From contig NC_067399.1 of assembly GCF_016432865.1 (NCBI RefSeq), positions 374,108,001 to 374,172,000 on the forward strand: a stretch of 64,000 nucleotides of DNA. Direction: 5' to 3'. Below are positions 10,246-56,599 of the stretch, piece by piece. Source of the stretch: Antechinus flavipes. Taxonomy: Eukaryota. The notes beneath the pieces were generated by a model. That model was not told the origin of the DNA, searched no databases, and worked only from the letters and a program-made list of their open reading frames with translations. The position numbers and the translations under genes were made by a program. Numbering within the stretch: position 1 is the stretch's first letter; each line of letters starts with the position of its first letter.

Positions 10246-11361
10246 CAGTCAACCCTCAATATTCCCATGTACAACTTTCAGATCTTGAAGCATTTGGGTA
10301 ATTTTATTAATGACCTAATTTTGACTTTTGACTTGGCAACTCTGCACATTTGTGGCTATGCACAGTAAAAAAAAATGAGAGTCACAATGCATATAACTGT
10401 GTAGTGGCTAGTATACTATTAGATACGTCCCTGGTCTTGTTCACCCTCTCATTGTAAAGAGATTCCTGTGCATTCATTGCATGTTTTCACAGTCTGCCTT
10501 TCAAACCAAAGTTTTATGTTATAATATGCCTGCAAAGTATAGTATAAGTCCTTTGGGCTCTAAGCCTAAGTATGCAAAATCATTTATGTGTCTAAGTGAG
10601 AAAATAAAAGAGTTAGATAAACTTCATATTAGAATGTCTGCAGCCACTGTTGACCACAAATTTGGTGTTAACGAGTTAAGGATTTACTGTATCCACAAAA
10701 AGGAGGAAAGCAATCATAAAAGTGTTCATGAATCCACCAGCTGTGAAGGACAGACTATTGGAGGTGATGGTGAGACCTCATCAGTCTTGGCATTTTTTGA
10801 CAGAAGTCTCATCAACCTTTCCTTTGAATTTCAGAGGGTGATCAAGGTAGAAAGGTTGATAGCAAGCAGTAAACAATACAGTACAATGTCCTTACATTAC
10901 CATCTATCTGACATAGTGGAAGATGCAATTCATGTTAAAAAAAAATCTTGGTTTTAAATTTTTTCTTTGCTGTATAGTATTTATGGTACTGTCCATTTCA
11001 TGTGTTATGAAAAGTGGATATTGTTTGAAATAATTTTTTTGAAATATTAGCACAAAAGGTTACAGAATTCTAGGAAAATTGTTCCTAAAACTGTTTTGCA
11101 TGTTACCAATTTTATTTTGTGTACTGCATTTTATGGGTTATTTAATGGTTAAGCTATTAGGAAAACTGCATATCATCAGAATTAATGTTTTGTTATAAAG
11201 AATTGTATGCAGAAAAGCATATTTTCAGTGATCTCTAGTGAAATATTGCAGTTTTTAGTGGTCCTAGGAACCTAGTCCCCCACTTCCCTTAGGTTCAATG
11301 CATCAACATTTGTATTTTTTACTTTTGTATCATTTTTACCTAGAAAGTTGAAGATTACCTA
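10246..11361 (+). mobile_element. Old, internally deleted Tigger-type (pogo) DNA transposon
   Basis: TA-CAGTCAACCCTC Tigger-like terminus at 10244-10257. The ORF at 10481-10957 contains SPLGSKPKYAKSFMCLSEKIKELDKL...AATVDHKFGVNELRIYCIHKKE, resembling the Tigger N-terminal HTH. A degenerate right TIR (about 12/18 match) lies near 11343-11361. Confidence 0.7.
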
Positions 11362-26680: not shown

Positions 26681-26912
26681 CAGTGATTCTTAACTCAGTT
26701 TTGTGGTAGGAACCTTTTGACAGTCTGGTGAAACTTATGGATCCCTTCTCAGAATAACATTTTCAAATGCACAAAATAAAAAAACATAGTATTACTAAGG
26801 AAATTAATTACACCGAAACAATGAATAATTTTTCCCATCTAATTTCACAGAACCCCTGAAATCTCCTCATGAACTCTATAGGAGTTTGTGGAGTTCAGGT
26901 TAAGAGCTTCTG
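26681..26912 (+). mobile_element. Non-autonomous hAT-Charlie (MER-type) element
   Basis: CAGTGATTCTTAAC...GTTAAGAGCTTCTG imperfect TIRs, internal CAGTCTGGTGAAACTTATGGATCCCTTCTCAGAATAA, and nTnTAGAn-like flanks. Confidence 0.75.
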
Positions 26913-28939: not shown

Positions 28940-29330
28940 TTTTTCATGCTTTTTGGGGGAGCAATAAGAGGACCAAGGAGGGAATAGGAGTGTTTCTCAG
29001 GGGAGGGTTGGGTAATGATAACAGAAGATGGTGAGAAAGCAACTTTTGTTTTCTCTTCCAAAAAGAATGATTTTTGGGTAGGTATAAGGAAAAAGCAAAA
29101 ATAATCATGTAGTTGAAGCTCAAGCAAAGAGAAGAAATGGTTCTATTGCTTTACTGCTGCTCTGAATGAATTTACCAGGCTCAGATGAACTGCATCCAAG
29201 CATACTTAAAAAAAAACAGCTTTGCTGTGATCTCTTAGTCTCTATTGGAACTTTTTGAAAGATTGGAGACTAAGGAAGGTGACACAGGACTCCTTCAGGA
29301 GAGAAAATGCCTTGATTTTGAAATGTCATC
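28940..29330 (+). mobile_element. CR1/L3 LINE ORF2 fragment (next RT segment at about 33620-33760)
   Basis: CCAGGCTCAGATGAACTGCATCCAAG (PGPDELHP-like). Later GATTCATCAAAAACAAGATATG...CATTTCCTTTTTGGACAGG (GFxKNRSC...ISFFDR-like). Confidence 0.6.
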
Positions 29331-30186
29331 CCTATCCAAGGACCTTCTCATTTTCTCTCTGTAGTTAATTACTTTAGTCTCCTTCTCTCAAAGAGAATAT
29401 AGCTATATTGTCCTTTCCTGATTCTAGGGAATACCCTAGAGGGGTGATAGGATGGCATTTTTTCCAAAGCTGTTGGTTTTTGCCCCACTTTTTATGTTGT
29501 TCCCCTCATTTTTAGCTGAGCATACTTACTGTCCCATTTTCATTTAGTTAATGAAGTATCACTTACTTTTTATGAAGGGATTTTTACTTTACAGATAAAG
29601 CAAGATATACAACCTCTACCCCCAATTCATGGGGGAGCATGTCCCCCATACTACCTTTAACTCTGTGGAGAGGTTGCTCAGAATTAATAAAATTTTTCTA
29701 TACTGTTATATTTCCAGAATTCACTTTTAAATTCTGCATAGAAATTCATCTAGTGCTTCTCAAATATCACTGGCTTGAGTCTTTTTTGTTTGTTTTTTTC
29801 CCTTGGGACCTTGGGCTACAAATCCCAGCATGGACTCTACTCTGAGACCCCAGTTAGTGTGCTTATCATGATCTTTTGAAACTCATAAAGTCATAGCTAT
29901 ACCCAATATCCATCTAAAAGCAGGAAAGAATGGATCCTGCAGAGAGGAAACCTGAAATCTGCAGCAGGACTATGGGCTCTATGCTCCTAGCCCCAGGTAA
30001 GAGAGGAACACTGATTTCAATGGCTTTTAGCAACTACCGTGTTTCCCCGATAATAAGACACTGTCTTATTAATTTTTTGGACAGAAAAAAAACCACCAGA
30101 GGGCTTATTTTCAGGGGAGGGCTTATTTTAATGAACATTGACAGCAATTTTAATAAACAGGTAAATGTGAACAAAAAAAAGTACCT

Positions 30187-30897
30187 TTATTCAATAATGA
30201 TCACGTCATCTTCTTCAACAACATCGTTGTAAGTGTCCATACCCTGAATTCCATCCTGGATGTCTTGCGCCTCTATTTCCTTCAGAAGAAGTGGACCCAA
30301 TCTGTCATGTCCAGCAATATAGCTCTCTTTAAATGAACATGTCTTGTCCAGGTAACCTGCTTGTAGTGCCTTGGCGACACAGCTGTCAGTAATTTTATCC
30401 CATGACTTCTTCACCCAAGTCATGACTTCTTGCAGACAGGGCTTCACAAAGTTTCCACGCTGATTTCTTTCCATTCTATTTTCAATGTAGTCATTGACTT
30501 CCATGCGCAAATGGTCCTTGAATGGCTTGTTTATTGCAATATCAAGGGTCTGGAGATAGGCAGTCATTCCTGCAGGAATCATTACTTGATCTATTCTCTC
30601 TGCAAGGAAGTTCTTCATTTCTTTAGCACTGTGAGTGCTGGCTGAATCCCAGATTATCAGACCTCTTTGGTTACCTCGCATTACAAGTGGCAGCATTAAA
30701 TCAACCCACTTTCTTATAACGGCTTGTGTATACCAGGCTTTTTCAGTTTCAAGAACGTAAATGCCTGATACACGTTCAGTCTTATCTTTCTTGCCCTTAC
30801 TGATGATTAGAAGTGTGGCTTTCTTTCCATCCAAACGAATTGCCAAAACACAGGTGACCTGTGCACTTTCATAGCCAGTGGTGGGAATGTAGATTGA
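30187..30897 (-). pseudogene. Transposase C-terminal half (DDE_1-type catalytic domain)
   Basis: The frame continues SIYIPTTGYESAQVTCVLAIRLDGKK...IIWDSASTH...IPAGMTAYLQTLDIAINKPFKDHLR and ends in an acidic tail and stop at 30187. The second and third Asp are 34 residues apart. It joins the N-terminal ORF if one base near 30898 is removed. Confidence 0.9.
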
Positions 30898-31483
30898 CAG
30901 TTGCACCCTTGTGATGAATTGTTGTTTGAGATCCTTGTCCCATAAACACTGCAGTTTCATCCATAGCAATCATATTGCAGGTTTGGTACTTGGAAATGTC
31001 GATCCTATCAATAAAGGACTTGAATGCAAGTGCACGTTTAATAACTTCAGCATCTTCCAGCTTAAACAGTGTTGTTGATCTTCTTAGGGACAGTTCATAC
31101 CGTTGAAGGAAACCGTCCAACCAGTGTTGTGATGCTTTGAATCCTTCTGAGACCATTTCAAACTCTGGTGCCATTGAAAGGGCAAATGCTTGAATATCAG
31201 CCCTGCGCACAACCAAGGCCTTTGCTCTCCTGTCAGCAATCCATTCACCAATGAGAATCTCCAAGTCAGGATATAAGGGTTGCTGACCTGATCCAGACCT
31301 GTGCTTTTGCCCTTTTCCCTCATCCACCTGTTGATTGAGGTTATTATAATTTGCTCTCCATTTTCTGACCATTCGAAGATCCAAAAGTTTTTCTTTGCAG
31401 AAAACTGCAAGATTCTTGCCATGTGACTCTTCTACAATTGTTTTCTTGTACTCAACAGTATAGCTCTTCCTTTTTGTACTCAT
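30869..31483 (-). pseudogene. Transposase N-terminal half: Brinker-like DNA-binding motif, CENP-B-type HTH and first catalytic Asp (MDET)
   Basis: ORF MSTKRKSYTVEYKKTIVEE...LRMVRKWR...LYPDLEILIGEWIADRRAKALVVRRADIQAFA...FKASQHWLDGFLQRYELSLRRST...IAMDETAVF matches the pogo/POGK-type domain layout. The frame is lost after HKGAT (about 30898). Confidence 0.9.
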
Positions 31484-31564
31484 GTCTGGGGGTCAAAACA
31501 GGATAATAAAATTATGACCATCAGTCCTTTTCACTCTATCATGCCCCTCAATAATGTTTTAACC

Positions 31565-31645
31565 CCATCATGCTCCCTGAGTGCTCCTTCTATCCTCCAT
31601 CATGCCCCCTGAGTTCTTCTTTTATCCTCCATCATGCCCCCTCAC
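31565..31645. repeat. 32-bp minisatellite (about 2.5 copies) in the transposon 5' region
   Basis: CCATCATGCYCCCT recurs at 31565, 31597 and 31629, an exact 32-bp period. Confidence 0.8.
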
Positions 31646-34600
31646 TCCCGCTTACATACCGGGTTTTTATGTTGTCCTGCCTCAGCTCTCCTCCACGGCA
31701 CTGCTCTCAATGATGCCAGCAAGCAAATCACTGGGGAAGAACAGGATGACGCGCTCACTGCTGCAGCTCTGATTGGATGCAGCTCGGAGCGTGGCATGCG
31801 TTTCACCCGGGGTGGGAGGGGGGATGGTGCATACAGAGGGTACTGTAATGTAGTGTGTAGCGCAGGGGATCACCTTCACTACAGTTGCAATCTCAATAGG
31901 GTTTATTTTTGGGGGAGGGCTTATTTTAGAGGAATCTTACACAGTAAGGGGAGGGCTTATTTTCAGGATAGGTCTTATTATCGGGGAAACACGGTAATCC
32001 TTTTTCACCAATGGTAGAAAGTCCACAAAGAACCTCTACCAAGACATTGTCCCTGCCTGAATAGTGCCTTTAATTTTTTTCTCTACTGAATGCAATATTC
32101 AGCATAGAATCAATAGTTGAGTAGAAAATATATCAAGGAATACAAGGAAAAACATATAAAATAACAATATTTATTTTGTTATGCTCTATCACTCCTCTTG
32201 AGGCTCAGAAGACCCTCAATCCATAGAATCAGTCTAGACCCAGAAATTCTAGGAAATACACAATTTAAGTTTGTTCTAGTGCATTTTTGAATATACCTTA
32301 GTCCCAACTACCCAGCCAATCAAAAAGGCTCTTTTTTTTACTTTGTGTTTAGTATTTTAGAACCCAGTGGCTGAATGTTCATATTCTAAAGTCCATATGA
32401 GTATTTAATTAACTAGCACTTTGTAAATGCTCATAATGACTGAGCTCACTGGCCAATCCTAATTATGTCTTTTTGGTTTATTTTCCTCTACCCCCAAATG
32501 GAATGTAATTCTAAGTGAATCTCCAAAATAAAACGTAAGTTCATGTTCACATTTCTCCAAAGATAGGTAATAGGGTCTCCAGCTCTGAGTCAGGGTACCA
32601 ATATGAGCAAATGGGCATGAGACAGTCTTTATTACACTCACTTCAGAAAATGTATAAGATGTGACAAACTCATATGGTCCTATAACTAAAGTAGAAATGA
32701 GAAGCATTCAAATAGTCCATTACCTTCTACCTCTACCTGAAGGCAAAAACCCTTTGGGGACTGCCTAACAAGCACTCCCCCTTCTATCTTCCACCTACAC
32801 TGCAACTCATGCTAATATCATGGAGGGTTGACAAGGTCTGGATCTACTGGATCTCCATGTTGTTGCTCCAATTTTCCATCTGCAGAGACAATGTTAGTGG
32901 ACCTCTTCATTCTCTAAGGAGCACATTGTTGAAGGAGTCTTTTTCCTCCATTATCTCTTACTGGAACTCCAATATCTCTTTGAACTCTTAATCTTGATAA
33001 CTTAGCATTACCCATGAAACAATCCACAAGACTAGGAAAGCCCATTTCCAGGGATGGACTGTTCCATCAATAAATGCTCAGAAAGTAAAACTTTTAAGAA
33101 GAAGGTGGTGATTAGGAACTGTAGCTCCAGATACTTCCCTTTAAGCTTCATTATGTGCTGCTCTTGCAAGTCACCATTTTCCTTTCAGAGTTAAGAGAGG
33201 AGAAATCCCTTTATGTTCCCCTATTTGGTCAAGTCTGAAAATCTAAGGGAAAGAAAATAGACAAAAGGTATCTGTTTCATAGCTTGCTTTTGCAGACCCT
33301 AGGAAAAAGACGACTCTTGAGAAAAGTCTGTCTGTCCTTACTTTCAATCACCAATCAACTTGGAGGCAACCCTGGTTCCTGGGAATCAGAGGGGTCTCTG
33401 TGTTCACTCAACAAGTCCCACTTTATGAGAGATATCTTACTAATAAAAACCACTCTATAATCTCATCAAGTTGATTAGAGGTTTGTCTATGAAATTAATC
33501 TGGATCTCTCTGGATCAACATTTCCTAAAGAAAAAAAAAGGAAAAAGAAATCTCCATTTCTCCCCAAATTCCAGAATATAGTATTAAATGTATGTTTTTT
33601 TGAACATTTAGACAAGAAAAAAGTAAATACAAAGGGCTCACACAGATTCATCAAAAACAAGATATGTTAGACTAGCCGCATTTCCTTTTTGGACAGGTAA
33701 CTAAATTTTTAGTTCACAATAATGCTACATACATAGGATTATAGTATCATAGATTTAGAGCTTAAAGAGAACATAAAAAACATCTAGTACAATCCCCTCA
33801 TTTTACATATGAGAACTTGAAAACTAAAAAAAAAAAATGACTAAGAGACTTGTTTAGAATAACACAGCCAGTATGTGTCAAATTTGAGGCCAGGTCTTTC
33901 TGACTCTGAAGATAACTGTTCATGTACTATGCTACATTTATATTCTTAAAAAAGTGTTTAATTGAGTGTTTAATCATGCTATGATCCTATTAACTTTAAA
34001 AGGTAGGAAGATATGGACATCCATTGACCCTGGTAGCAGTGTCCATTTGAGCCATTTGCTCTAATGTCCAGAGCAGCCCTGACTTATGGAAACAGGTACA
34101 TTGTGAACTAAGAGACGTATTGAGAACAAACTAGACACATGGAAGAAAGAGGCTCAGGACTCAACAAGGGCATGATTTTCAGAATCTAGCAGAGAATTAC
34201 AGCCAACAGAAACAATGAGGTCTCCATGAAAGTACAAAAAGACTTCCAGAAATCAGAAACTTTTAGTTTAACCTTTGATCATATGTATTAAATTTTGAGC
34301 CCACCCAACCCAGGAACTTTGTGTGTCTAAGGAAAAAGTTTACCCCTCATTTTTACTATACTTCTAAGACAACTTCACTATATCATTTCAATAAATACCC
34401 TTTGCTATAAATGAGCTAAGATGCCACTTTGGATAGAGTACTAGGTTTGGAGTCAGGGAAATCAGAGTTCAAATCTAGCCTCGGGCATTTAATAGATATA
34501 TGCTTTTGGATAAATCATTTAACCTCTAAGTTTTGTGAACTGCAAAATTGGAATAATGAAAGCACCTATTTTCCAGGGTTGAGGTAAGAAACAAAATGAG

Positions 34601-37496: not shown

Positions 37497-38025
37497 NNNN
37501 NNNNNNNNNNNNNNNNNNNNNNNNNNNNNNNNNNNNNNNNNNNNNNNNNNNNNNNNNNNNNNNNNNNNNNNNNNNNNNNNNNNNNNNNNNNNNNNNNNNN
37601 NNNNNNNNNNNNNNNNNNNNNNNNNNNNNNNNNNNNNNNNNNNNNNNNNNNNNNNNNNNNNNNNNNNNNNNNNNNNNNNNNNNNNNNNNNNNNNNNNNNN
37701 NNNNNNNNNNNNNNNNNNNNNNNNNNNNNNNNNNNNNNNNNNNNNNNNNNNNNNNNNNNNNNNNNNNNNNNNNNNNNNNNNNNNNNNNNNNNNNNNNNNN
37801 NNNNNNNNNNNNNNNNNNNNNNNGAGGAGAAAAGAGAAGGAGAAAAGAGAGAGGGAGAGGAGAGAGCAGAGAGANNNNNNNNNNNNNNNNNNNNNNNNNN
37901 NNNNNNNNNNNNNNNNNNNNNNNNNNNNNNNNNNNNNNNNNNNNNNNNNNNNNNNNNNNNNNNNNNNNNNNNNNNNNNNNNNNNNNNNNNNNNNNNNNNN
38001 NNNNNNNNNNNNNNNNNNNNNNNNN
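37497..38025. other. Assembly gaps (N 37497-37823 and 37875-38025) around a GA-rich island; further gaps at 50740-50895, 53597-53735 and 54307-54465
   Basis: Runs of N. ORFs spanning them are artefacts. Confidence 1.
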
Positions 38026-45665: not shown

Positions 45666-46190
45666 AAAGATGAGGATAGATACTATATCTTCACTTATTT
45701 TTTCTGGCTCCTTTGGCTTCTTTCAAGATTCAGCGGTTATTTCAGCTTCTGAAACAAGCCTTTCCTGGTTCCCTCTACAGCTAATCTCTCTGATATTCTC
45801 TCCCATTTATACTATTGATCTTAGGGGTGTTGTTCAGTCATTTTCAGTCTCTCTCATTCTTCATAACCACCTTTGTGGTTTTCTTGACAAAGATACGGGA
45901 GAGATTTGCCATTTCTTTCTCTACCTCATTTTTTCAAATGAGGAAACGGAGGCAAATAGGTTTAAGTGATTTGCCTAGGGTCACAGAATTCGAAAGTATC
46001 TGAGGCCAGATGTGAACTTTTAAAGATAAGTCTGTCTGACTTTAGGACTGTTGCTCTATCTATTGCACCAGCCAGTTGCCCTGAGCTTATAATACAAAGT
46101 TCTTTTCAAATTATTTCCTCTATTGGACTGTGAACACTTTGGAATCAAGAGTTTGTATCCTGAGTACTTAGTGCCTGGTATCTGCTTTAT

Positions 46191-47800
46191 AGCTGTACCA
46201 GATCTAAAATTATATTATAAAGCAGCAGTTACTAAAACCATCTGGTATTGGCTAAGAAATAGACTAGTTGATCAATGGAATAGGTTAGGTTCAAAGGACA
46301 AAACAGCCAATAATTTTAATAATATAGTGTTTGACAAACCCAAAGACACCAGTTTCTGGGATAAGAATGCATTATTTGACAAAAATTGCTGGGAAAATTG
46401 GAAATCAGTATGGCAGAAACTAGGCATTGACCCACACTTAACACCGTACACCAAGGTAAGGTCAAAATGGGTTCATGATCTAGGCATAAAGAATGAGATG
46501 ATAAATAAATTGGAAGAGCAGAGGATAATTTACCTCTCAGACCTGTGGAAGAGGGAGGAATTTATGACCAAAGAAGAACTAGAGATCACTATTGATCACA
46601 AAATAGAAAATTTTGATTATATCAAATTGATATACAAACAAACAAATGCAAACAAGATTAGAAGGGAAACAATAAACTGGGAAAACATTTTTACAATCAA
46701 AGGTTCTGATAAAGGCCTCATTTCCAAAATATATAGAGAATTAACTCTAATCTATAAGAAGTCAAACCATTCTCCAATTGATAAATGGTCAAAGGATATG
46801 AACAGACAATTCTCAGAAGAAGAAATTGAAACTATTTATAGACATATGAAAATATGCTCCAAATCATTATTAATCAGAGAAATGCAAATTAAGACAATTC
46901 TGAGATACCACTACACACCTGTCAGATTGGCTAGAATGACAGGGAAAGATAATGGGGAATGTTGGAGGGGATGTGGGAAAACAGGGACACTGATACATTG
47001 TTGGTGGAATTGTGAACACATCCAGCCCTTCTGGAGAGAAATTTGGAACTATGCTCAAAAAGTTATCAAACTGTGCATACCCTTTGATCCAGCAGTGTTT
47101 CTACTGGGCTTATACCCCAAAGAGATACTAAAGAAAGGAAAGGGACCTGTATGTGCCAAAATGTTTGTGGCAGCCCTGTTTGTAGTGGTTAGAAGCTGGA
47201 AAATGAAAGGATGTCCATCAATTGGAGAATGGTTGAGTAAATTGTGGTATATGAACGTCATGGAATATTATTGTTCTGTAAGGAATGACCAGCAGGATGA
47301 ATACAGAGAGGACTGGCGAGACTTACATGAACTGATGCTGAGTGAAATGAGCAGAACCAGGAGATCATTATATACCTCAACAACAATACTGTTTGAGGAT
47401 GTATTCTGATGGAAGTGGACTTCTTCGATAAAGAGAGCCTTAATTGATCAAAGATGGACAGAAGCAGCTACACCCAGAGAAAGAACACTGGGAAATGAAT
47501 ATAAACTGCTTGCATTTTTGTTTTTCTTCCCGGGTTATTTATACCTTCTGAATTCAATTCTCCCTGTGCAACAAGAGAACTGTTCGGTTCTGCACACATA
47601 TATTGTATCTAGGATATACTGCAACCCATTCAACATGTAAAGGACTCTTGCCATCTGGGGGAAGGGGTGGAGGGAGGGAGGGGAAAAATCAGAACAGAAG
47701 TGAATGCAAAGGATAATGCTGTAAAAAATACCCTGGCATGCGTTCTATCAATAAAAAGTTATTAAAAAATTAAAAAAAAGAAAGAAAACACACACACTCA
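46191..47800 (+). mobile_element. Young 5'-truncated L1 (ORF2 C-terminus, 3' UTR, poly(A))
   Basis: AVPDLKLYYKAAVTKTIWYW...CWRGCGKTGTLIHCWWNC (CCHC)...stop at 47409, then a G-rich 3' UTR tract, AATAAA at 47750 and an A-rich tail. The start codon at 46123 lies in flanking sequence and is spurious. No convincing TSD found. Confidence 0.95.
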
Positions 47801-50599: not shown

Positions 50600-51420
50600 A
50601 ACATCTAATTAAGCAAAATAATTTCTTTTAGTAATATTCTTTATGTCTTTTTATTTAATTTAAAAAATTTTTTTGATACTGGCAAATTGGTTTCCATATC
50701 TTCTCTTTTTAAATCAGATTATCTAACATTTTACACATGNNNNNNNNNNNNNNNNNNNNNNNNNNNNNNNNNNNNNNNNNNNNNNNNNNNNNNNNNNNNN
50801 NNNNNNNNNNNNNNNNNNNNNNNNNNNNNNNNNNNNNNNNNNNNNNNNNNNNNNNNNNNNNNNNNNNNNNNNNNNNNNNNNNNNNNNNNNNNNNNCCAAA
50901 TATTCAAAAATCTTCATGGTCAAGCAATTTTCCCTGATACTCTGCTTGTAATTGTGATTATTCTCTTCCAGGTTTCCACTTTGGTAGTCTTTGGAGTCAT
51001 GATACCTCTTTATTACATTTGGTCTTTATTCTGCTTTAATTGTTGATTTGTGACCTTTTGTTAAATTTCTCCTTCTCCTGCTTTTGTATAAAAAGTTAAG
51101 ATCCTGTTTCCTTTTGACTTTAATGTCCTGGATTCCTGCTGCTGATTTTTACTTTTTCAGGTATATCTGGGTTCTGAATACTGACAGGATTCAGGCCCTC
51201 CTGCATCATCCAAATACAAAATAATGTGGTCTTCAGAGCTCTCTGGGCATTTGAGACACTTGTCAAGTCCTAGCTGTGGGGCTTACTGGTTTGAGGATGC
51301 CAGCTCTTAGATCATTGTCAATGGTTAGATTTACTAGACTGTTGTGAGGTCGAGCCAATGTTCTCACCAAGAACTTTCTCACCAACATTATTTCTTCCTG
51401 TCCCTAGATAAAAGAGTACT
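50600..51420 (-). mobile_element. Old L1/HAL1 5' and ORF1 N-terminal fragment
   Basis: Reverse complement of 50900-51010 resembles 21540-21660 (GACTACC...GGAAA...CCAGAAG...AATTAC). Confidence 0.45.
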
Positions 51421-53479: not shown

Positions 53480-53815
53480 GCAAGCAAACAAGCAATAACA
53501 ACAAAAAGGTGCAAATCCAATGCTTTGATCCATATTTACTCTCCATAGTTCTCTCTCTGGATGGGGATGGCATTTTCCACCACAAGTCTATTGGAANNNN
53601 NNNNNNNNNNNNNNNNNNNNNNNNNNNNNNNNNNNNNNNNNNNNNNNNNNNNNNNNNNNNNNNNNNNNNNNNNNNNNNNNNNNNNNNNNNNNNNNNNNNN
53701 NNNNNNNNNNNNNNNNNNNNNNNNNNNNNNNNNNNGAACATCACATAATCTTGTTGTTACTATGCACAATGTTTTCTTGGTTCTAGCTCACTTCATTTAG
53801 CATCAGTTCATGCAA
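53480..53815 (-). mobile_element. L1 3' fragment spanning an N gap
   Basis: TGCTTTGATCCATATTTACTCTCCATAGTTCTCTCTCTGGATGGGGATGGCATT...TTTAGCATCAGTTCATG. Confidence 0.75.
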
Positions 53816-54306: not shown

Positions 54307-56599
54307 NNNNNNNNNNNNNNNNNNNNNNNNNNNNNNNNNNNNNNNNNNNNNNNNNNNNNNNNNNNNNNNNNNNNNNNNNNNNNNNNNNNNNNNNNNNNNN
54401 NNNNNNNNNNNNNNNNNNNNNNNNNNNNNNNNNNNNNNNNNNNNNNNNNNNNNNNNNNNNNNNNNCCTTCTGCCTTTGTAGAGTGAAAGGAAAAAAAGAG
54501 GTTCACATAACATTTAAACCACCTATAACCATTAAGTTAATTGTTTTGGTGCTCTCAATCATAGGACCACAGATTAGAGCTAGAAGCCATTTTAGAGAAT
54601 ATCTGGTCTATCTAGTCCTTAAAGTTACCTAGGCTAACTCATAACAAAAAAGAAACCCTCTCTATGTTGGCTTCAACATCTTAATCATACAGATGAAGAA
54701 ACTGAAGTCCAGGAAAGTGATGAATTACTCAAGATCATAAAAGCACTAAAAATCAAAAACAGAATTGAACCCAGGCCCTCTGATGACCAAGGACATAATA
54801 ATAACATAATATTTCTTATCTAATTTAGCTAGGGCATAAAGTTATATGAAAATGCATCATGAGATAAGGTAGGGTGGCAATAAATTGTAGAGGACTTTGG
54901 ATGATCAGGAGTCAATAGGGAGCTGCTGAAAATTTGGGGATGATGTACTATATATTCTATTAATAATGAAGATTATTCAAATATTGGAAGGGATAGGATG
55001 TCTCAATAATACACTTTTTCTGGACAATAGGATGATCAAGACAGAAAGGGGACCATCTAGCATGATGAACTCATATTACAGATGAAAAAACTGATGCTCA
55101 TGTATATTATTTGGAATGCCTCAGGTTTCAAGAATAATAAGTGGCAGAACTGAGGTTTTTTAAATTGAAGGCTATTTGCATTGAATTACATTCTGCTTCC
55201 TTTTTGAGAGGTAGCTTGGATGTGGATTTATAGACCTAGATAATCTTGTTACCTGGGAAATACAAATGAAGAAAGAGTTGTCCACCAGGCTAATGGTTTT
55301 CCCCATTTAAAAAATAACATACCTTTCCTTGCCTGGGTGATAACTCTAATAGTGATAACTGGTCTCTGACATTCCCCAAAGAGATAGGAGCCAGTGTAGA
55401 GGCTGCTTATGCTGAGAATTAGGTTCCATGAAGAGGACCTGAGCAGCTTATAAGAGGCATGCTTGAAAATTTCTAACATTGCCCTATCTGGGCCCAAATT
55501 TGATTTTCTGCTTAATGATACTTTAAGCAATTCCAAGCCTTAGTCTGAATTTTCCCTTTTTTGTTATTTTGTTGCTTTTCCCTTAACTGGTTCCAATTTC
55601 TCCACATCTGTCAGAAAACAAGACCAGAGTGAATACCACACTGTTAAGAAAAAAAAAAGTACTTTACTGGTTCCAGAGTCAGTAAGTAGAAATATTTATT
55701 CTTCAATATTTCAAGTCTTCATCCTGGGTAATACACACAAGTGTTAGATTTCTTTTTAACAAAATCAATAACAGTACCATATTGGAGGCTCATTCCGAAC
55801 TTGTGGTCTAGTCTGATGCCACTGTCTTTTTTTGATCTATTTGTGCCTGGCCATCTCTCATTTGGGCATGGGACAAAATTGAGTTCAAGTCTTGGTGTGA
55901 CTCTGCAGTGTGACTGTAGGCAAAGTCCCTTTATCTTTCTGCCACAAACTCCTCCTCTACTTAGATTAAATCACCTCTCAATTCCTTACTGACATTCTCT
56001 AGATCATTTCCCTTCTCAGACTTGTTTTTATAGCTACAAATCATAGAGTTGGATTAGACATTTTCTAGATGCTTTCCCGTGCTAATATTCTAAGTTTTAT
56101 TATGTTTTCATTCCTTTTGGACTTTAAATAATTTGGTAAAATTTTACTTAGTGCCTTCTTTTTCAAACAATCTGCTCTGGGCTTTGGGGATCGAAAGATT
56201 AAAGACATTATCCTTTCTGCCTTTCAGGAGGTCATAAGGCATTGGGGATTAGGGGTGGGTTCAGCATGTAAACCAATAGGTATGATCCAAGACAGAATAT
56301 GGGGGGTGTGGCTGGGGAGAGTGTTGATGTGCAGAAGAAAGACTCAAAGTGCTCTGGCCATATTAGAAGAAGTAGGGTCAGAGTGGACTTCACAAAGGAC
56401 AAGGTGACACTTGAATTTGACTTTGAAAAAGAAAGGGATCAAGAGTTTGTTATATGTTAAAGTGAATCTACTCTGAAATTTACAAAGCTCAGTAGTAATG
56501 TTATCTTATTTGAGCCTCACAACAATCTTGAGAGGTAGGTACTATTATTATCCCTGTTTTGTTGAAAGTGCTTCATTATTGGCCAGGTGTCTCTCCTTC

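Follow-up and report, generated by a model that had tools for sequence, protein, structure and literature searches.

How long has a nearly intact DNA transposon been resident in the genome of an Australian marsupial, and by what route did its family arrive there? The question is raised by a 1,958-bp element at positions 30037-31994 of a 64,000-nucleotide stretch of the Antechinus flavipes genome (contig NC_067399.1, positions 374,108,001 to 374,172,000; referred to throughout as the window), which an earlier note, made from the letters alone, had taken for a recent horizontal invader. In most mammals, DNA transposons are held to have died out long ago; bats, some rodents and primates, the opossum and the dasyurids are exceptions, and it is chiefly on these that the case for horizontal transfer as a force reshaping mammalian genomes rests. 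We consider it highly probable that the element is an inactivated copy of a PasserB transposon, a member of a family that entered by horizontal transfer and was amplified in the dasyurids, and that this copy was inserted before the two closest species split.

Structure of the element

The ends of the element are marked by a perfect 25-nt inverted repeat, made up of TA and a 23-nt terminal inverted repeat (TIR), at 30035-30059 and 31972-31996, which encloses 1,958 bp and confirms the earlier description of identical TIRs, CpGs included, with an intact TA duplication. The 23-mer has only these two sites in the window, where none would be expected by chance, and TA is present on both sides, as it is at the end of the left-side loose-end consensus of other family copies. 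At less than 30 nt and starting CCGTG, the TIR fits the Passer feature "short TIRs beginning CCGTR". A search of the window for a paralogous empty site returned none, and the window holds no long direct repeats. CpG reaches its peak for the window in the element, at an observed/expected ratio of 0.34 against 0.07 elsewhere, and the contrast that had been drawn between a CpG-rich element and CpG-depleted surroundings holds. The window minus the element, at that low ratio and with a GC content of 36%, is extremely depleted of CpG even among mammals.

The features are listed below in window coordinates; X1 and X3 are sequencing runs of organisms A and B, described further on, and Crpo-PasserB is a published element of Crocodylus porosus.

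30035-30036, no strand: TA target-site duplication, left; the host flank is joined to the element exactly there in X1 and X3 contigs
30037-30059, plus strand: 23-nt TIR at the 3' end of the gene, starting CCGTG; 100% complementary to 31972-31994 and matching the Crpo-PasserB TIR at 22/23 bases
30062-30129, plus strand: subterminal repeats, namely, at 30062, a motif resembling the TIR, and then GGGCTTATTTT twice without mismatch (30101-30111 and 30119-30129); the motif is conserved in bat and lizard elements
30187-30898, minus strand: C-terminal piece of the transposase, 236 codons plus stop, with the DDE_1 core; second catalytic aspartate at 30646-30648, third at 30541-30543, 34 residues between
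30899, minus strand: one extra base (frameshift), absent from most other family copies
30900-31483, minus strand: N-terminal piece of the transposase, 194 codons from the ATG at 31483; weak HTH_Tnp_1-like match at residues 4-54, HTH_Tnp_Tc5 at 71-134; first catalytic aspartate at 30959-30961
31484-31971, minus strand: 5' non-coding region, with a 32-nt tandem repeat at 31565-31642 (2.4 copies) and GGGCTTATTTT-type motifs at 31899, 31917 and 31953
31972-31994, minus strand: 23-nt TIR at the 5' end of the gene, complement of the left TIR
31995-31996, no strand: TA target-site duplication, right; an X1 contig continues from 31972 into the right flank

The five copies of GGGCTTATTTT all lie within ~130 nt of either end, and these subterminal repeats are probably extra binding sites for the transposase. 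The 5' non-coding region carries indels of 26 nt and 11 nt relative to L001, a contig of the same family, and its first 100 nt are ~83% identical to the corresponding bat element.

The transposase frame runs on the minus strand from the ATG at 31483 to the stop at 30187-30189 and is interrupted once, by the extra base, so that two open pieces (31483-30900 and 30898-30187) together hold 431 codons and no in-frame stop, in agreement with the earlier reading of 431 residues and a single frameshift. The broken gene was analysed throughout as two separate pieces, with no repaired frame and no consensus built, and the intact comparator is a natural relative, the 432-aa protein P0001, which is 93% identical to the window copy and is encoded by two mutually identical Logan contigs from two runs, L001 and L002. 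Pfam places HTH_Tnp_Tc5 in the first piece (E 2e-11) and DDE_1 in the second (E 3e-18), and all three catalytic aspartates are present. In P0001 the triad is D175, D279 and D315, a DD35D arrangement, with 35 residues between the last two aspartates, whose three columns are invariant among 32 relatives; the window copy has one codon fewer and thus 34 residues. The Brinker-like DNA-binding domain that had been proposed is undetected, the Pfam Brinker domain (BrkDBD) giving no match in the window protein or in P0001 even at E 10. It is seen in 5/32 aligned relatives, which argues that the N-terminal helix-turn-helix (HTH) is homologous to the Brinker-like HTH. The extra base at 30899 is left out in 1715/2058 (X1), 1813/1902 (X3) and 429/429 (X8, a run of organism E) of the depth and is absent from L001 and L002; because most other copies lack it, the frameshift is taken to be private to the window copy.

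Assignment to the Passer family

Within the pogo superfamily the element is a member of the Passer family (TcMar-Tc2 in the RepeatMasker classification) and, more narrowly, of the PasserB group. Passer is defined by a TA duplication, short TIRs, HTH_Tnp_Tc5 with or without BrkDBD together with DDE_1, and DD35D (Gao et al. 2020, PMC7386202). The single-frame layout of 400-500 aa is matched by 431 codons with HTH_Tnp_Tc5 and DDE_1, the definition permitting HTH_Tnp_Tc5 alone. Table S1 of that study (PMC7386202) lists Crpo-PasserB, at 431 aa with DD35D, and one DD34D Passer is also to be found there; the window TIR is identical to that of Crpo-PasserB at 22/23 bases and to that of Hero-PasserB (Helobdella robusta) at ~19/23, and the first few hundred bases of the printed Crpo-PasserB DNA are visibly homologous to the window from 30035 on. 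Indirect support for the assignment comes from this TIR and DNA homology to listed PasserB elements and from 70-75% identity of the transposase to Helobdella robusta proteins. The listing of C. elegans Tc2 as PasserC (PMC7386202) fits the RepeatMasker class TcMar-Tc2.

The relatives are proteins of 430-440 aa with the same two domains, several of which NCBI has automatically named 'pogo transposable element with KRAB domain', and both POGK and POGZ derive from Passer (PMC7386202). The element is indeed of the Passer type and of the family that was the source of POGK, as had been proposed. A Tigger label was considered and rejected: the TIR starts CCGTG where Tigger has CAGT, there is no CENP-B_N match even at E 10, and the transposase measures 431-432 aa against ~540-600 aa in mammals. 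Metatherian Tiggers have been described with lengths of 2,245-2,379 bp and transposases of 541-546 aa (PMC9219625).

Copy number and deletion derivatives

Sequencing runs of at least nine coded organisms contain 27-72% of the sampled words of the element and its flanks, and runs of four of them, A (X1), B (X3), E (X8) and G (X10), were aligned to window positions 29037-32994. The summed contig depth is ~30 in the flanks, 1e5-1e6 over the ends (30037-~30880 and ~31545-31994) and ~1e4 in the middle, and many joints bypass 630-1,590 internal bases. As an order of magnitude only, the family comprises thousands of copies, in which internally deleted derivatives (~0.4, 0.5, 1.0 and 1.3 kb) far outnumber full-length elements. 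A published RepeatModeler table for Antechinus stuartii gives 3,098 TcMar-Tc2 pieces covering 1.75 Mb, and these are plausibly the Passer family of the window element. L001 and L002 carry the majority letter at nearly all sites where the window copy is the odd one out.

The very small runs X15-X17, guessed to be RNA (20-88 million letters), contain 27% of the words, and the three metatranscriptomes X18-X20 contain 7-9%; these figures may reflect transcription of the family or its occurrence in samples of another kind.

Age and fixation of the window copy

Compared with L001, the window copy has accumulated 43 substitutions over 1,595 aligned bases, or 2.70% (2.0% outside CpG), of which 35 are transitions and 10 are changes from CpG to TpG or CpA on the side of the window copy. 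It retains 20 CpGs where L001 has 31, about a third having been lost. At the marsupial neutral rate of 3.21e-9 per year (Gilbert et al. 2013, PMC3621081), a divergence of 2.0-2.7% corresponds to ~6-8 million years (My), and at the slower rate of 1.37e-9, which is used for antechinus demography, to 15-20 My. A second line of evidence is provided by the junctions. In a contig of organism B (X3), the same left flank runs into the TIR at an identical base, there being 8 differences over ~1,025 nt, and contigs of organism A (X1) span both junctions. Organism A matches the flanks with 2 differences per kb. Since B shares the left junction at the same base, the insertion predates the split of A and B, which is placed 5.9 million years ago if B is A. 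stuartii; the earlier note had proposed a test for empty orthologous sites in related marsupials, and in B the site is occupied at the left junction. In runs X8 and X10 the flanks are patchily covered and no junction-spanning contig is listed. The probability that perfect TIRs with all four CpGs would be kept at the estimated age is ~0.1; such ends are mildly lucky and not diagnostic of extreme youth. In essence, the locus is an ordinary decayed copy, fixed, inactivated and near full length, inserted roughly 6-8 My ago and perhaps earlier.

A TTC codon after 30593, missing in the window copy, is present in ~30% of the depth in organisms A and B, some 70% of whose copies lack it, against ~100% in E and G. 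It follows that the shorter form spread once the lineage of A and B had separated from E and G, at a time when transposition of the family was still going on. It is improbable that this 34-residue subfamily, frequent only in the two closest Antechinus-like organisms, can still move in present-day antechinuses; if it can, it would be the first active cut-and-paste transposon known from a marsupial, none having been reported (Gilbert et al. 2013, PMC3621081). A T>A difference at 30766 is seen in organism G and in L001/L002 alone, and this site and the TTC codon at 30593 are possible phylogenetic or subfamily markers for dasyurids.

Origin of the family

Close relatives of the transposase come from a striking scatter of named hosts, with protein identities of 82% in Rhinolophus, 79% in Zootoca, 75% in Pipistrellus, 74% in Ranitomeya and Xenopus, 72% in Crotalus and 70-75% in Helobdella. 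Further named hosts are a tegu, Hyla, Poecilia (a poeciliid fish), a slow loris, the sugar glider, Stegodyphus, a mite, Trichuris, Octopus and a microsporidian. A distribution so patchy is one mark of horizontal transfer. The earlier note had asked for high identity across phyla as well; the patchiness is found, but the closest non-marsupial relatives found reach only 79-82% protein identity, and no near-identical donor from another phylum is among them.

A maximum-likelihood tree of 41 proteins, comprising relatives of the window transposase only, is star-like, its core clade forming an unresolved polytomy, and conflicts with the host phylogeny: the two bats are apart, Pipistrellus is joined to Xenopus (100/96), the marsupial sequence groups weakly with Zootoca, and Trichuris suis falls inside the tetrapod clade. 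Synonymous divergence (dS) between the marsupial sequence and that of Rhinolophus is 0.39; for Zootoca it is 0.43, and for the Zootoca-Rhinolophus pair 0.26, an order in which lizard and bat are closer than marsupial and bat and which thus reverses the host distances; the ratio of nonsynonymous to synonymous divergence (dN/dS) is 0.23-0.29. Published values put the median dS between human and opossum at ~1, and by that yardstick the values for the element would be low.

The PasserB-like element of Rhinolophus ferrumequinum (L003, 35736-37823) is 2,088 bp long, as against 1,958 bp in antechinus, is flanked by TA and has 20/23 TIR bases identical. Protein identity is 82% for this element and 79% for that of Zootoca vivipara (L004), and the coding nucleotides agree at 87% and 85%, respectively. 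Even the non-coding ends can be aligned between the marsupial, bat and lizard elements, and the subterminal repeats are common to all three. With dS at 0.39-0.43, neither can have been the direct donor. Within the marsupials, a gene-model fragment of the sugar glider, Petaurus breviceps, is identical to P0001 at 48/48 residues, these 48 being all that could be compared. Dasyuromorphia and Diprotodontia split ~60 My ago, and such identity is very unlikely for copies separated since then. Taken together, the patchy hosts, the conflict of trees, the order of dS values and the Petaurus identity argue for a horizontal origin, perhaps with parallel entries into Australian orders, and that origin is well supported.

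As for a vector, the TIR and the family profile were scanned against viral contigs, giving no TIR match and 27 pattern hits that are unconfirmed. Trichuris suis and T. trichiura, both gut parasites of mammals, lie within the tetrapod clade, and the microsporidian Enteropsectra breve has a fragment (P0043, P0059, P0064); parasites are candidate carriers, contamination by host DNA being a possible alternative.

Copies of the family have also been read into gene models, as in 'R3H domain containing 1' of Rhinolophus (L003 36368-37621), 'DnaJC17' of Pipistrellus, 'ashwin' of Zootoca, 'calpain-13' of Petaurus and 'cysteine dioxygenase' of Stegodyphus (set P0071, P0073, P0095, P0108, P0045), which are probably annotation artefacts of unmasked transposons. 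In squamate gene models (P0072, P0099, P0102, P0103, P0129), among them 'zinc finger protein 777-like' of Anolis, 'ZNF197-like' of Pantherophis and one of Erythrolamprus, an HTH_Tnp_Tc5 part is joined to KRAB or SCAN. These fusions may be lineage-specific host-transposase genes that echo the birth of POGK, or annotation chimeras.

Alternative explanations

Had the family arrived in this species within the last ~1 My or so, in line with the recent invasion read by the earlier note, the window copy would be fresh and nearly active. Its perfect TIRs with four CpGs, intact TA, lack of stops and 5-fold CpG excess over background speak for such an arrival, as does the natural intact relative at 93% protein identity. 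However, the copy has diverged by 2.7% from the family majority and lost 10 CpGs, about a third of the total; the same junction is occupied in a sister species; the family has reached very high copy number, and its deletion derivatives are of many kinds, across at least four organisms aligned and nine listed; and the perfect TIRs, at the probability given above, are not diagnostic. An invasion so recent is very unlikely. What stands of the original claim is that the element is far younger than the repeats around it and that its family has a well-supported horizontal origin; its recency was overstated. The opposite extreme, in which a Passer lineage was inherited from the therian or amniote ancestor and remained continuously active with no horizontal transfer, draws on the dN/dS values across marsupial, bat and lizard, which reflect long purifying selection on the transposase, on dS values of 0.39-0.43, which are not small, and on POGK and POGZ, which attest to an early presence of Passer among vertebrates (PMC7386202). 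Against it stand the separation of the bats, the pairing of frog with bat and the whipworm among tetrapods, together with a lizard-bat dS below that of marsupial and bat. The diprotodontian copy is identical at every residue compared across a split of ~60 My, and no older, more diverged layer was seen at a likeness of at least 90%, which is a weak test. Purely vertical descent is accordingly judged unlikely. A third possibility, that of a domesticated POGK-like gene in the service of the host, is suggested by the names that NCBI has given to several relatives, but the element is bounded by TIR and TA, present in many copies and broken in frame, its protein has no KRAB, SCAN or ZNF domain, and its triad is an intact DDD where POGK has DN35D (PMC7386202). 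Nor is there any sign of syntenic, single-copy conservation across marsupials at a dN/dS far below 1, or of lost TIRs; domestication is hardly conceivable here.

The reading that we prefer, that of an inactivated PasserB copy from a horizontally acquired family, has several points weighing against it. Organism A is read as A. flavipes and B as A. stuartii by inference, the layout of the coded studies fitting Tian et al. 2021, for a 2021 study with two samples of A together with organisms C and D, and Brandies et al. 2020, for a 2020 study of B. The flank divergence of 0.8% between them is low for a split of 5.9 My at 3.21e-9, which leaves the absolute dates uncertain within 6-20 My. The ratio of nonsynonymous to synonymous differences (pN/pS) between the window copy and L001 is 0.44, which suggests that part of the 2.7% may be divergence between subfamilies and not decay after insertion. 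Summed depth is not copy number, so that 'thousands' gives the order of magnitude only. Being Logan contigs assembled from a repeat, L001 and L002 may follow the majority path rather than represent single genomic copies, and their intact 432-aa frame is no proof of an intact genomic copy. The search found no donor closer than 82% protein identity.

Proposed history

From what the family has in common, the two N-terminal HTH domains of the ~432-aa transposase would recognise the 23-nt TIRs together with the subterminal GGGCTTATTTT motifs, and the D-D-D triad of the same protein would cut and rejoin DNA, with insertion at TA duplicating the TA. The family most probably reached Australian marsupials by horizontal transfer and would then have been amplified to thousands of copies in dasyurids, chiefly as internally deleted, non-autonomous derivatives mobilised in trans. 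Activity would have lasted until a subfamily one codon shorter arose, with 34 in place of 35 residues between the last two aspartates. The window copy, as a member of this 34-residue subfamily, would have been inserted before the two closest species split, and its later decay would comprise one frameshift, ~2-2.7% substitutions and the loss of a third of its CpGs.

Other features of the window

A family profile detected no second pogo-like remnant in the window, and Pfam assigned no family to nine other long open reading frames (ORFs). The 'Tigger at 10246' and 'hAT at 26681' of the earlier note could not be confirmed: the long ORFs there have no Pfam match, and neither clear TIRs nor a match to the family profile were found. 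The ORF at 46123-47409 on the plus strand (428 aa) has no Pfam family at E 0.001; inspection by eye suggests the C-terminal third of L1 ORF2 with a Cys/His-rich tail, and hence the 3' part of a fairly young L1. Five runs of N, 932 bases in total, lie at 37497-37823, 37875-38025, 50740-50895, 53597-53735 and 54307-54465.

Significance and comparison with known systems

Within the mammals, Passer was reported from Chiroptera and Afrotheria only (Gao et al. 2020, PMC7386202), to which a survey of 391 species added Monotremata, Rodentia, Insectivora and Cetartiodactyla (Wang et al. 2023, PMC9976928). Marsupials are absent from both surveys, and neither Sarcophilus nor Antechinus nor the word 'marsupial' occurs in the supplementary files of the latter. 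The main study of Tasmanian-devil repeats names OC1 and hAT-1_MEu alone as transferred DNA transposons and leaves pogo, Tigger and mariner unmentioned. It therefore seems that this known family had not been reported from marsupials before, although automatic repeat libraries almost certainly contain it already, and a marsupial Passer fills a gap in the two surveys. As a third horizontally acquired dasyurid family, from a superfamily other than those of OC1 and hAT-1_MEu, it would supply independent data on the permeability of the isolated Australian fauna, as well as markers for dasyurid phylogeny, both of insertion presence/absence and of subfamily, the TTC codon being an example. High activity in human cells has been recorded for native Passer transposases of fish (PMC9976928), and natural intact mammalian copies may interest the builders of genetic tools.

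The nearest known system is PasserB itself (Gao et al. 2020, PMC7386202; Wang et al. 2023, PMC9976928), with which the element shares the TA duplication, the TIR starting CCGTG, the subterminal motif, recognisably homologous coding DNA and a transposase of ~431-437 aa in which HTH_Tnp_Tc5 and DDE_1 alone are detectable. The DD35D of PasserB matches the family majority sequence, whereas the subfamily of the window copy differs in having 34 residues. A further difference is one of abundance: Crpo-PasserB and Hero-PasserB are listed with 2-17 copies, far below the thousands, mainly deletion derivatives, of the antechinus family. For Rhinolophus, a different element, PasserC, is alone listed in the published surveys. 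POGK and POGZ share the core of HTH_Tnp_Tc5 and DDE_1 with its 35-residue spacing (PMC7386202), but they are single-copy, syntenic, devoid of TIRs and fused to KRAB or zinc fingers, POGK being DN35D, whereas the antechinus element is a bounded, multi-copy, broken transposon.

A parallel in terms of history is provided by OC1_Das and hAT-1_MEu (PMC3621081, PMC4408412), which are hAT elements with 8-bp duplications, in contrast to the pogo/Tc2-type element with its TA. OC1 is at least 95% identical across continents, and for the antechinus family no such close foreign relative was found. Nonetheless, both entered dasyurids and other Australian marsupials horizontally, much as is proposed here, and hAT-1_MEu too is found in more than one Australian order. 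Both also underwent a dasyurid burst 10-20 My ago, with deletion derivatives resembling miniature inverted-repeat transposable elements far outnumbering the autonomous copies, and in this the PasserB family of antechinus resembles them.

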